Both the position numbers and the translations under genes were made by a program. 64,000 nt of DNA from Bugula neritina (Eukaryota; Animalia; Bryozoa), in contig OZ037772.1 of the NCBI GenBank assembly GCA_964035545.1, forward strand, positions 9,169,150 to 9,233,149, in the 5' to 3' direction. Below, piece by piece: positions 479 through 29,642 of the stretch (the first letter of the stretch is position 1; each line of letters starts with the position of its first letter). The notes beneath the pieces are model-generated. The model did not search any database and was not told the DNA's origin. It saw nothing but the letters and a program-made list of their open reading frames with translations.

Positions 479-3400
479 CAGCTCAGGCTTGTTACGATCA
501 GAATACTGCCACAAAAAGGAAACAGCTTCATTGGCTGACGGTGGACCCAGCACATTGGCCGGGATCTCTTTATGGTTGTTGACATATATCACAGGCTCCT
601 CTTGTATACCTGCATGACAGAAAAAAGAAGACAACTACCAACACGACCACAGAGAAACATATATAATATTATATTATATTTATTTTAATATATAATATCT
701 TATTATGATATACTATAAAACTTACCATTGTTTAATAAAAATGTTGTTCTCTGCCTGATAGGTTGTGTAGAATCATATTTTACTAAAAGTTTAACGTTCC
801 ATTCAGCAGAGCGTAAAATTTCATAATCTTCTACAAGAAACATGAAACAATTAAGATAAAACAGAAATATCTATTACATGTTAGATGGTTGTGAGGATGA
901 TAAATACGAAAATATATAATTTAATATGTGCAAACATGTTAAATTATAGCAAACAACTGACAACAATTGAATTAGTTAAATTTGATAGCCTATAATAAGA
1001 GAAAAGTTTATGAAACATTGGATTTGGGGTTTGGTTTCAATACTATCAGTGAGATTTCAAACTATCTGTAAAGACGTTTATGAAGTTACTTAGAGTAGAA
1101 CAACCATCTACAGTTTTATCTATTTTATAAACACAAACTGCATGTATATATAGAGCTTTATTTTTATCTATAATGTATTCATTTTAAACTAATGCATTTA
1201 GATGAGTTAAACTATATTATTTAAGTAATTATATGTTCGTGCATGTATGGTCTAAATTAATTTATAAAGTAACTCATTTAGTCAACTGCTATTAAAGTAA
1301 AATAATAAAGTAAAATAATTTAGTTTATGATTTAAATGTTTCATAAATAAATTTATGAATCTAAATTTCTATTCATATTTAGTTTATGATTTAAATGTTT
1401 CATAAATAAATTTATGAATCTAAATTTCTATTCATATACAAATTAGAAAAGTGTCTGACTACTTTCATTGTACCTTTATGCTTTATGCAGTTCAATTTAT
1501 GATACCAATATTTCTATCGACTAAAATTAACAAGTTATTGAAGTGCCAACTGTTAAAAAAGCTATTTTTGTTTTAATGAGGCACAGCCAGTGCTAACTAA
1601 AAGGCCTCTGGCACTTGGCTGTGCTGTAGAAAGCTTTTCGTAGTACGTTTTATTATAGCTAAAGTAGCTTAGCAAAGTAGCGCTATAATTTCACTACAAC
1701 TTTAGTGGTCAAAGTAAGAAGTTACCTGAGTTTGAAGACTTGAGTGCCAGCCAGGTTATGAACTCATAGTCTACGTTGATCAGTGACATCGGCTCTTCGG
1801 CAACTTTCTCTGGCAGGCAGCGACAGTTTTCTCCAAAAATTCTGTGTAAATTCAGTCTCTCACACAGCCGCTGCCAAAATGTCGCTTTTGATAACAAAAG
1901 ATTGTAGCAGTTTGTAGGAAAAATAGCATCTGGCTCGTCAATCATTTCCAGATAAAGAAGTCGTTCTGGTGACGGCCCTTCTATATTCAAAACCTGTCAA
2001 ATAAAATTTGAAAGAAATTTTCAATTTAAAGTGCCTTATACTTTCTAAAACATATTTTTGAGTGAAAATTTTAGGTTATTAAGTGGAAATAAGTGGAATT
2101 GTACTTTTACAACAAATGGCATAGTAGCCTAAGATCCTTTAAATGACAGTGTGAAGCGTTGTAGCTCTGAAGAAAGAAAAAATAAAACACACAAGCATCA
2201 TACACTTCATGGTCATATATAATATAACCTAAACAGTTTCATCTGCCCCACTGACATTCAACAGATAAATTCACTCAAATTTTGACCACCCACTCAACAT
2301 TAAATTACCAACTCAACATTGAGCCATTAATGCACCCACTCAACCTTGGACAACCCACTCGATATTTTACGACTCACTATGCAGCTAATGAACCACTCAC
2401 CCATTATTTGACCACCCGCTATGCAGTAGACCACCCACATATACTGTGGATCACACACTATACAGTGGACCACCTACTATACTGTGGACCACCTACTATA
2501 CAGTGAACCACCGAGACTAAGTATTGGACCACCCACATATACTGTGGACCACCCACATATACTTTGGGCCACCCACATATACTGTGGACCACCCACATAT
2601 ACTTTGGGCCACCCACATATGCTGTGGACCACCTACTATACAGAGGACCACCCACTCTACAGAGGACCACCCACTCCACAGAGGACCACCAATGCTCCAC
2701 AGAGTACCAGTTACAAAATGTCAAACTTACAGAATGTATGTCATACCACGGATAATCAGCACCAGTTGAGTCGTTCAAAATTAGCTGCTGAGCTAAAAAT
2801 TATTCAAATGCAATGTTGAACTTTTATATAACTATAATATACATATACAATACTTATCTTGCTGGAAACTAAGAATTTATAACATAAATAAATGTTTTTT
2901 TTTCTAAAAGTTAGTGTTACTGTTATTGCTCACGTCCTTCCAACAAATCAATTTTTCCTGTTAAACGACCAGCTTTTCCATAATGACTAGAAAAGTTGCA
3001 TTTTTTCACTGCTTGAATGTACCCCACTCGCACAGTCTCTCCAACTGCTACCGGTGGTAGCTCAACTCTTGCCGTTGACCTATAAACATTGAATTAAAAT
3101 ACATTTTGCCAGTTATCATTGCCATCAGATTAGGTAACATTTTTCAGTAGATGAACTTATGTAGCTTTGTTTACGTATGAATAAAATATTTTATAACATA
3201 ATAATAATAGTTATTTATAGGTATTTAATAAAATTTATGATTTAATAAAAAGTTTTGAGCTCAAAGTTATTTCTATATATAGACTAATAGACTTGCTCAT
3301 GTGGTTTGTATATCCTGACAAAGCCTATATTATTATTAATGCCAAATAGATTTTCAAATTATAAGTGCTGCATAGCAATTGCATGAATTTTGGTACATTG

Positions 3401-4601
3401 CCAAAAATTAGCAAAATCAAGCATTACTTATACGGAGCACATACTCTGATACAAGAAAAAAAACTATGTGGATTTTTCAGTGTATAATAATGTGTATAAT
3501 AATGTGTATAATAATGTGTATAATAATGATTATTAATTTATATTTATCTAGCACCTTCATCAAAAATACTTGACTTAAAAATTGAATACTTACAAAGAAA
3601 AGCCTTAAAACTGAAAATAAATCTTAATAAAATATTTAAATGACTTGTTGTTGAAAGCAAAACAAGTAAAAGGTTTTTAAAAACTTCTTTCAAAAACTCA
3701 CATGAAAAGTGTAAGCTCAGCCTTCAGTTTATTTCTATCTTCATACTCAATGAAAAAAGCAGGGTAGTTGACTTGAGAAGCCGTGAACCCTTTGACCTCT
3801 ACTGGTTGATAGAGGTAACAGGAAGTGGTTAGACATCTTCTACTGTCAAATAATAACAAATACACTTTAGTCTCGCAGTTGATATTCTAAACTTTCTGTC
3901 TAACTAATATTGACAGAACCACAAACTTGACTCGCCAAATCTTTTACAGGAATTTTGAACTTTAAAAAAGTGTAATATTTTTCAACAGTTTGCTTCAAGT
4001 ATTCTTCTTATATAATTAGTTATTATTCATGGAAATTTTTTTTTCCTTCTAGCAGGCTACCTTGAGTCTCTTCAAAGATTACTCTGTAATATTATAGCAT
4101 TCAAGTATATGAAACTGTTGGATAAGATTAAACACCCTACTACTCATTCCCATTCAAAAAGCATTAAAAGAATGTCAGCTTTTTACGACAGCTTGAAATA
4201 AATTCAAATCAAACTTTCTTCCATTTCTTGGCTAGATTTTTTTCCCACTTTTTTCTCACGTGCAGGCAAAAAAATATATATTTATACATATATAGGTTCA
4301 CAAGCACTTAAAAAATAACATTTCTCATTATATAGTTAATAATATTATATGAATCAATGACAAAATAACTTTTGAATTGTTTTAATTACACACAATTATA
4401 ACACTAAAGCATTATTCTTTGTTGAATAGCTTTTTAAAACCCAACGAACCTGTCTCCTATTTGATTTAATGAAATAAAATGCTGACTTGTGGAGGTGATG
4501 TGGTGATAGCTTGCAGTGACACAGCTTACAGGTGCTCTCCTTTCATAGCTGCTGAGCCTGCAGCTGCTTCTGACAACTGCTTGAACCAATATAGACCTCA
4601 T
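479..4601 (-). CDS. FAM78: FAM78-like protein, diverged paralog 1 (last exon not found, probably off the left edge)
   Basis: Seven phase-compatible GT-AG exons: 4601-4450, 3842-3702, 3079-2934 (146 nt), 2792-2731, 1993-1726, 830-726, 609-479. Translation: MRSILVQAVVRSSCRLSS...SRRCLTTSCYLYQ...ARVELPPVAVGETVRVGYIQAV...ILNDSTGADYPWY...FITWLAL...ILRSAEW...IPANVLGPPSANEAVSFLW. Motifs match FAM78 (GWIQAC, SDSDGxxYPWY, FTTWL, PNANDAQxLxW). Confidence 0.85.
1319..1437. repeat. 59-bp tandem duplication
   Basis: TTTAGTTTATGATTTAAATG...TTCTATTCATA occurs twice. Confidence 0.85.
2425..2700. repeat. Minisatellite, ~19-20-bp unit GGACCACCCACATATACTGT
   Basis: About 13 degenerate tandem units in intron 4 of paralog 1. 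Confidence 0.9.
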
Positions 4602-28500: not shown

Positions 28501-29642
28501 CTAAAAGTCTACTATTAATTTTAAAAATGCTAAATGATGCATAGCTCTTTTTGCATTTTACATCATAGAATTATCTTTCCTCTGGCTGACATGTTACATT
28601 GTTCAGAGGTAAGATAACTCTTTATGTAGTCTTGTAAATTACAATCTTATACTTTTATAGGAGAAATAAAAGTGTTAAAGACCTTAAAGTGGGAGATTCA
28701 CAGTGGTGTTGACATTGATTACACGCAAAAACCAGGAAAACAAACTATAACTCGCCATTGGGGTATAATTTATGCATTTCATTTTAAATAATAATTTTTA
28801 ATACTAAATATTGCTAAAATAAGACTCTATTTTCACTATAATAGCTTAAATTTAATTAGATATGTAATATAACTGTTTCATTTAGACCAGTTTTTCTGGG
28901 TTGCCTAAATAATATAGTTTATATATTTAGAAATCATGATTTTGTCAGAAGATAGCATATTCACAATGAATTTTTGATGCGTTTATCAGACACACGCTAA
29001 TTCGTATCAAGGAGTTATCATCTTTTATATAGTACTATATTAGTATAACGTTTCAACTTATATCAAATTTATAGATTAAAATCAATAAATGAGAGGTATT
29101 TTAATGTATAACTTTGAAACAATATAGGCATGTGTTTATTTCAGAAAACAAATGTAAAATAGACATGTTGAGGGAAAACAATGTGTTAATTCCTAATGAG
29201 GTGTTGTCTTCTCCTACAGCCAATACAGCACAGCAGTACATTTGGTACCCAGCAATAGGGGACACAACTCCTAAAGTACGTATGAAAATCTGCTTACAGC
29301 GTTTAGAATATTGATTTTTATAATGCAGCATATATTGTATATCACTTAGATAGCTAGTAAAACTATATTATATATATATATATATATATATATATATATA
29401 TATATATATATATATATATATATATTGCTCGTAATTGCTCTTTTGTCACAATATAGAAAGCAAATTCTCAGCCTACCTGAAAACGTTCACCATCATAGCT
29501 TCTCACATGGGTGGAGATTTTAAAAATATTTGTGAGTCATTTTAATCTAGTCTAATTAAGTGTTGCATGATTATTTCTTTTAAAATTTCAGATCATCATA
29601 GACGCTGAAGGTAGCTCAGAATCTTTGAACAGACTGGTTTGA
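25590..29642 (+). CDS. FAM78: FAM78-like protein, diverged paralog 4 (~335 aa)
   Basis: Exons 25590-25663, 26089-26253, 26699-26844 (146 nt), 27236-27294, 28095-28374, 28661-28762, 29145-29275, 29592-29642. Translation: MIKFHLNLLFTNRY...VRCTISTS...EIWGIGFIQAL...MISDSTKEFFPW...RNQGFYTWLAV...VLKTLKW...PTANTAQQYIWYP...IIIDAE...V*. Confidence 0.87.
26573..26667. repeat. (CACG)n/(CA)n microsatellite
   Basis: Seen directly in the sequence. Confidence 0.9.
27832..27990. repeat. (GCTACT/GCTACC)n microsatellite
   Basis: Degenerate hexamer array in intron 4 of paralog 4. Confidence 0.9.

Follow-up and report, generated by a model that had tools for sequence, protein, structure and literature searches.

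The FAM78 proteins (FAM78A and FAM78B) are conserved from invertebrates to humans, and their function, location and solved structure are absent from the literature searched. A stretch of 64,000 nucleotides of the bryozoan Bugula neritina (assembly GCA_964035545.1, contig OZ037772.1, positions 9,169,150 to 9,233,149; hereafter the window) carries one conserved FAM78 gene and four strongly diverged copies, P1 to P4, and raises the question of where the products of these copies go in the cell. The original prediction held that a lineage-specific FAM78 subfamily had been retargeted to mitochondria, had expanded and had diverged quickly. The sequence gives good support to retargeting, expansion and fast divergence, for 12 genes instead of four, while the lineage-specific part is unproven. 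It appears likely that the diverged copies form a subfamily imported into the mitochondrial matrix, with a two-step cleavage that would free the FAM78 core. Such cleavage, by the mitochondrial processing peptidase (MPP) and then the mitochondrial intermediate peptidase (MIP), is that of R-10 presequences, which carry Arg at -10, a bulky hydrophobic residue at -8 and small hydroxylated residues at -7 to -5 (PMC7723863, PMC11626719).

The diverged FAM78 genes and their N-termini

At least 13 FAM78 loci were found genome-wide by an exon-3 profile search, one conserved and 12 diverged: P1 to P4 in the window, U1 to U7 just upstream of it, and C9 on contig (chromosome) 9. A search of the genome with a FAM78 family profile returned no locus beyond these 13. 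The seven upstream copies, recovered by exon-wise tblastn of the flanking DNA within 50 kb of the window (contig 8, approximately 9119000-9167300), have open frames and the same type of leader as P1 to P4, and the chromosome 8 array comprises 11 diverged copies in about 100 kb, some of them head-to-head. C9 (contig 9, 6449390-6453834, minus strand), the thirteenth FAM78 copy, has the leader and the R-10 motif, is sister to P4 in the tree and shows an apparent GC donor at its second intron. All 13 genes have an open frame, and the core intron phases 2,2,1,0,1,1,0 are common to the conserved gene and the copies; the conserved gene of Watersipora has the same exon blocks. Pairwise identity is 15-42% among the 12 diverged copies and 22-36% between them and conserved FAM78 members, or 23-36% when set against the conserved B. 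neritina copy alone. Named FAM78 proteins are the matches of the exon-3 profile search, and hhalign of the copies' exon profiles against the FAM78 family profile gave probabilities of 99.6% and 98.0%. By core sequence and shared gene structure, the diverged copies are FAM78 homologues. The four copies in the window are modelled as follows.

4450-4601 (minus): P1 exon 1, presequence-like leader of 50 residues with a phase-2 donor; donor and junction kept in a sibling lineage
3702-3842 (minus): P1 exon 2, R-10 motif (Arg53), then the start of the FAM78 core
3079-2934, 2792-2731, 1993-1726, 830-726, 609-479 (minus): P1 core exons, open frame, phases 1,0,1,1,0 as in the conserved gene; the model (core 479-3079) is without its last exon, which was not located
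11857-11996 (minus): P2 exon 1, presequence-like leader of 46 residues with nine Lys/Arg and no Asp/Glu; top donor score of seven candidates
10816-10661 (R-10 motif, Arg48), 9163-9018, 8108-8050, 7960-7702, 6994-6899, 6140-6010, 5252-5178 (minus): P2 exons from the second to the last
13202-13290 (plus): P3 exon 1, leader of 29 residues; head-to-head with P2
13725-13886 (R-10 motif, Arg31), 14814-14959, 15353-15426, 16107-16374, 16715-16840, 19478-19605, 20035-20085 (plus): P3 exons from the second to the last
25590-25663 (plus): P4 exon 1, leader of 24 residues without Asp/Glu; top donor of 24 candidates
26089-26253 (motif offset by one residue, Arg25), 26699-26844, 27236-27294, 28095-28374, 28661-28762, 29145-29275, 29592-29642 (plus): P4 exons from the second on

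Translation across the AG/GT phase-2 exon 1/2 junctions confirmed the four spliced N-termini as originally proposed, and on these translations P1 to P3 match R-X-(F/L/I)-X-X-(S/T/G) exactly, with P4 offset by one residue. The motif had been placed at the exon 1/2 junction itself; it does lie near it, its exact place ranging from the junction to eight residues inside exon 2. Nine of the 12 copies carry the exact motif, two (P4 and U1) are offset by one residue and one (U3) has Lys; the published pattern for cleavage by MPP and MIP shows Ser/Thr enrichment at -7 to -5 and tolerates Lys (PMC11626719). An exact motif within 17 residues of the junction, present in 9/12 copies, is found in 2.3% of 17-residue windows from random ATG-initiated open reading frames (ORFs) of the same DNA and in 1.8% of windows from FAM78 homologues. 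With the sequences in register, Arg occupies its column in 11/12 (Lys in U3), Phe, Ile or Leu stands at -8 in all 12, Thr or Ser follows in 11/12, and Ser, Thr or Gly is found at -5 in every copy. The last four columns of the octapeptide are variable, the most frequent residue reaching two or three of 12, and conservation returns with x-P-(L/V)-P, where the core begins. The register between motif and core is fixed, and the second cut would fall just before the folded core. In this alignment of sequences otherwise about 20% identical, only the positions specified by the motif have survived. In P1 exon 2, the sibling lineage has the motif unchanged but 11 nonsynonymous changes elsewhere in the exon.

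All 12 copies start with a basic, acid-poor leader that is amphipathic in most of them and weakest in U3 and P3. The predicted charge of two leaders is borne out: P2 has 10 Lys/Arg and its first acidic residue at position 49, and P4 has its first acid at position 43. Acids occur in the other leaders of the window at Glu20 and Asp50 (P1) and Asp27 (P3). Compared with 865 null ATG-initiated ORFs of the same AT-rich DNA, the first 30 residues have a higher net charge (p 1.6e-5), fewer acids (p 5e-5) and a higher hydrophobic moment (p 6e-5), the 12 paralogs behind these p values being not fully independent. A net charge of +3 or more, together with no more than one acid in 30 residues, is seen in 10/12 copies, against 22% of the null ORFs and 7% of FAM78 homologues. 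A hydrophobic stretch of secretory or transmembrane type is absent from the leaders, whose best 10-residue hydropathy (0.2-2.05) is interrupted by charged or polar residues. A search of the ESM Atlas gave no usable match for the P2 leader. Leader and motif together were found in 0/60 full-length FAM78 homologues among the profile matches, copies elsewhere remaining possible. Like R-10 presequences, the leaders measure 23-54 residues to the predicted MPP cut, are net positive, contain few acids and are mostly amphipathic; unlike them, several are rich in Lys and not in Arg.

The conserved gene and the origin of the leaders

37121-52694 (minus): conserved FAM78 gene, likely the parent lineage, with exons 52694-52583, 49365-49211, 45778-45666, 44160-43996, 42780-42635, 42227-42163, 41626-41446, 40857-40756, 39654-39527, 37183-37121

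The exons of this gene match KAF6021410, the FAM78A record of B. neritina, at 90-100% identity, and its product is 85% identical to that of Watersipora and 50% to primate FAM78A. It had been taken to start MGASGS, a myristoylation-type N-terminus, and the diverged copies to have swapped this lipid anchor for an import peptide. However, the upstream exon 52694-52583 is coding, Cys-containing, basic and in frame with the MGASGS exon (MG at 49261). Its amino-acid sequence is unchanged in the sibling assembly and shares 68% identity with the long RefSeq isoform of Watersipora. The Met of this MG is therefore the second one in a longer, conserved isoform, and the proposed start would hold only for a possible shorter one. 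A leader does replace the MG-type or long N-terminus in the copies, none of which starts MG, yet the anchor swap is unproven because MGxxxS is such an internal Met. An MG start is found in 27% of 60 full-length animal FAM78 matches, and the literature searched contains no link between FAM78 and myristoylation. Overall, the copies resemble FAM78A/B in matching the family profile, in keeping core residues and in sharing the intron pattern of the bryozoan conserved gene; they differ in their N-terminus, in being 12 extra genes and in having lost many polar residues.

The N-terminal part of the conserved protein already has some features of the leaders. Exon 45778-45666 is Ser/Lys/Arg-rich, and where the copies have leader and motif the protein has a basic, Ser-rich, acid-poor stretch and R-x-x-L-x-x-S, the latter opening the counterpart of their exon 2. 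With this stretch and this near-motif at the same place, part of the signal is inherited. The ancestral region already looked half presequence-like, which offers a route for the origin of the leaders and is also the source of the main rival explanation. According to the latter, the leaders are real coding N-termini, but these are disordered basic tails that go back to the Ser/Lys/Arg-rich linker of the parent; the proteins would be cytosolic, nuclear or membrane-associated. Besides the linker and the near-motif, this account can call on AT-rich DNA, which favours Lys, Asn, Ile and Phe, and on the Lys-rich composition of some leaders. It leaves unexplained why only the motif columns, at a fixed distance to the core, were kept in proteins about 20% identical, and why the leaders lack acids and are amphipathic to a degree not seen in the AT-rich null; their coupling to the motif, seen in none of the 60 homologues, also speaks against it. 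We consider it improbable.

Several other points, like the near-motif, weigh against matrix import. The paralogs are related, so the motif counts are not twelve independent trials, and P4 and U1 were aligned to the register by hand with one extra residue. The simple charge test is passed by 22% of the null ORFs. U3 is weak, with Lys in the motif, two acids and an exon 1 that comes only fourth among its candidates; the P3 leader has a hydrophobic moment of only 0.37 and little Arg. Finally, the sole sequencing run found is of heterozygous DNA, and it contains no intron-skipping joints over window positions 10660-14950 (4,291 letters).

Matrix import, the reading preferred here, would have come about in a few steps. 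The conserved FAM78 gene would have duplicated locally, and one copy would have shed the exons upstream, the MG exon among them. The presequence that it gained would consist of a new basic first exon and of the beginning of exon 2, in which a disordered stretch of the parent, rich in Arg, Ser and Thr, would have been turned into the R-10 site. The presequence-bearing copy would then have expanded to at least 12 genes, 11 on chromosome 8 and one on chromosome 9. Their precursors would enter via TOM/TIM23, MPP would cleave them two residues past the Arg, MIP would then remove the octapeptide, and P4 and U1 would have one more residue to remove, as in R-3 processing. The product would be a soluble matrix protein of about 250-300 amino acids, a beta-sandwich that begins immediately ahead of x-P-(L/V)-P.

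A single origin of the 12 copies is allowed by a quick tree, in which they fall on one side of a branch with support 94, and together with the Bugula/Watersipora conserved pair on one side of another with support 90; the branches are long and neither support is starred. As the copies adjoin this conserved pair, an older origin would be possible. No relatives of the diverged copies were found outside the B. neritina lineages, in searches of limited sensitivity, and the 76 kb around the Watersipora gene contain no diverged copy, copies elsewhere remaining possible. Five strongly diverged FAM78-like metagenome proteins (ENA/Logan/JGI contigs) are leaderless.

Coding status of the first exons and of the copies

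It is conceivable, yet quite unlikely, that the first exons are mis-predicted and the leaders are chance ORFs, in which case the real start could lie in some other exon, or at a Met within or beyond exon 2. The only run found being DNA, the junctions rest on genomic sequence, and a profile search gave no full-length diverged copy from the NCBI annotation of the sibling assembly. Against this, candidate first exons from an ATG to a phase-2 donor were ranked by donor strength alone, blind to composition, and the proposed exon 1 came first in 10/12 genes; in P1 it was second and in U3 fourth. In contigs of a sibling B. neritina lineage (approximately 72-89% DNA identity), the ATG, frame and donor are kept in U7 and C9, the two leaders fully covered, as are the exon 1/2 junction and donor of P1; neither P2 exon 1 nor P3 exon 2 found a sibling counterpart in two metagenome scans. 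An MG-type alternative exon was not found for 11/12 copies, the sole candidate lying 2 kb upstream of U4. Since exon 2 has a phase-2 acceptor in 12/12 copies, an upstream coding exon is required, and since exon 2 is defined by homology and by its acceptor, the motif is independent of the first-exon choice. The ATGs of P2 and P3 are 1206 bp apart; those of U1 and U2, which are head-to-head and face away from each other, are separated by 288 bp, which leaves no space for earlier coding exons. The individual sequenced in the run is very heterozygous over the interval covered, and the indels listed there are intronic or intergenic, none of them in leader exons. An upstream 8-mer shared by 9/12 copies was rejected, its significance being lost after AT-matching and multiple testing.

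The ratio of nonsynonymous to synonymous substitution (dN/dS) of the cores against the sibling lineage is 0.18 (seven copies, 692 codons; range 0.11-0.27), with p 4e-29 against neutrality; for exon 3 it is 0.17 in P2 and 0.18 in P4. The conserved gene gives 0.02, the copies' cores being about nine times higher (Fisher p 5e-8); the sibling data are JGI contigs for the copies and an NCBI contig for the conserved gene, different samples with similar dS (0.28 and 0.26). With this core dN/dS and similar dS across samples, the seven tested copies are working genes that evolve fast, with cores under purifying selection. The leaders show a dN/dS of about 0.5 (56 codons, two leaders), with 12 nonsynonymous changes, no Asp/Glu gained and no indel. 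That the copies are decaying duplicates or pseudogenes, as their very long branches and one degenerate exon fragment nearby might suggest, is largely refuted by these ratios and by 12 genes without internal stops or frameshifts, and is extremely unlikely. The fragment in question is a relic of local duplication.

33010-33159 (minus): degenerate fragment of the P4 penultimate exon, inverted and with a deletion inside the exon, 82% identical in DNA across 67 bp

The window contains other features around these genes. A gene with PAN and F5/8-type-C (fucolectin-like) domains lies between P3 and P4 (22667-24727, minus). Two intronless rhodopsin-like seven-transmembrane ORFs, approximately 34% identical and with weak PF00001 matches, sit between P4 and the conserved FAM78 gene (31110-31811, plus; 35205-36155, minus), the second being also annotated in the sibling assembly. 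A P3 intron includes, at 17598-19183, a perfect 472-bp inverted duplicate (17598-18069 and 18712-19183) and an ORF of 286 amino acids (18262-19122) without a Pfam match, which we take to resemble a Penelope-type GIY-YIG endonuclease. In a P2 intron, a 400-bp palindrome (10186-10586, 95%) is centred on TA repeats.

Fold and possible role

The protein folded was the conserved one of Watersipora, and the diverged copies may share its fold. In the predicted structure the core is all-beta with long strands (predicted local distance difference test, pLDDT, 91), and the approximately 22 residues before it are disordered (pLDDT about 50). Structure matches (PDB sequence search, Foldseek, VIA) were FAM78 clusters and generic beta-sandwiches of the Ig-like/Asf1/ApaG type (best Z 7.1, Asf1-like); the latter, like weak leukocidin/porin sandwich rows, were not taken as functional evidence. 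An enzyme fold was not indicated, and Pfam has no model for the FAM78 family. The copies keep the core Trp, Gly, Gln, Tyr, Asp and Pro residues and, among family-conserved columns, about 61-64% of the hydrophobic and Gly/Pro ones against 42% of the polar ones. Five positions (one Asp, one Pro, two Gly, one Leu) do not vary across the 12 copies, one Gln is found in 11/12, and the net charge of the mature part varies from -14 to +6. With core residues kept and polar ones relaxed, a non-catalytic structural or binding role fits.

By analogy, the most likely setting for a structural role would be the mitochondria of spermatids or sperm, a suggestion to which we give somewhat less than even odds. 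In Drosophila, the sperm-leucylaminopeptidases S-Lap 1-8 are testis-specific, mitochondrial, structural matrix material in sperm (PMC6388916), and paralogs that arose by duplication, evolve fast and are targeted to mitochondria show an enrichment of testis bias (PMC2995371). The sperm of myolaemate bryozoans has 2-4 midpiece mitochondria (PMC7317743). Like the S-Laps, the FAM78 copies are expanded, diverged, presequence-bearing paralogs with altered conserved residues; they differ in sequence and fold, which are unrelated, and testis specificity and mitochondrial place are shown for the S-Laps and proposed here. More tentatively, a bryozoan-specific family of twelve matrix FAM78 proteins might form a structural component of the sperm midpiece, in its few elongated mitochondria. 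A direct pointer to sperm is absent from the present results, which counts against this proposal. The proteins could also be mitochondrial outside sperm, as matrix proteins of somatic tissue or of the oocyte/embryophore whose binding specificities have diversified (stress, development, symbiont- or bryostatin-related), an account that competes with the functional part only, shares the same targeting evidence and is a serious possibility, if short of probable. The spread of mature charge and the 15-42% identity could suit distinct partners, and some polar residues, namely the Asp (12/12) and the Gln (11/12), are invariant or nearly so; the testis bias of such Drosophila paralogs (PMC2995371), S-Laps included (PMC6388916), would argue by analogy against it.

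Both FAM78 and neolocalization are themselves known, and the literature searched contains no mitochondrial FAM78 and no earlier report of a mitochondria-type leader on a FAM78 protein. As in other cases of neolocalization after duplication (a survey of the human mitochondrial proteome, PMC2790464; GLUD2, PMC2478720), a duplicate would have gained or sharpened mitochondrial targeting; unlike in those cases, relocation would have been followed by a 12-fold expansion and extreme divergence, in a family of unknown function. The presequence apparently arose from an existing basic linker and a new first exon, perhaps in a single origin, which the tree allows, and was kept through extreme divergence. 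The predicted first exons, cut sites and mature N-termini lend themselves to direct tests in a bryozoan that is well studied in the laboratory, and twelve versions at about 20% identity offer a natural deep-mutational series for the residues that the fold requires. If true, matrix import would give the FAM78 family its first localisation handle, and a sperm role would be an independent case of S-Lap-like sperm mitochondrial material, based on a beta-sandwich with no relation to the S-Laps, and would provide the first hint of the role of the FAM78 fold.

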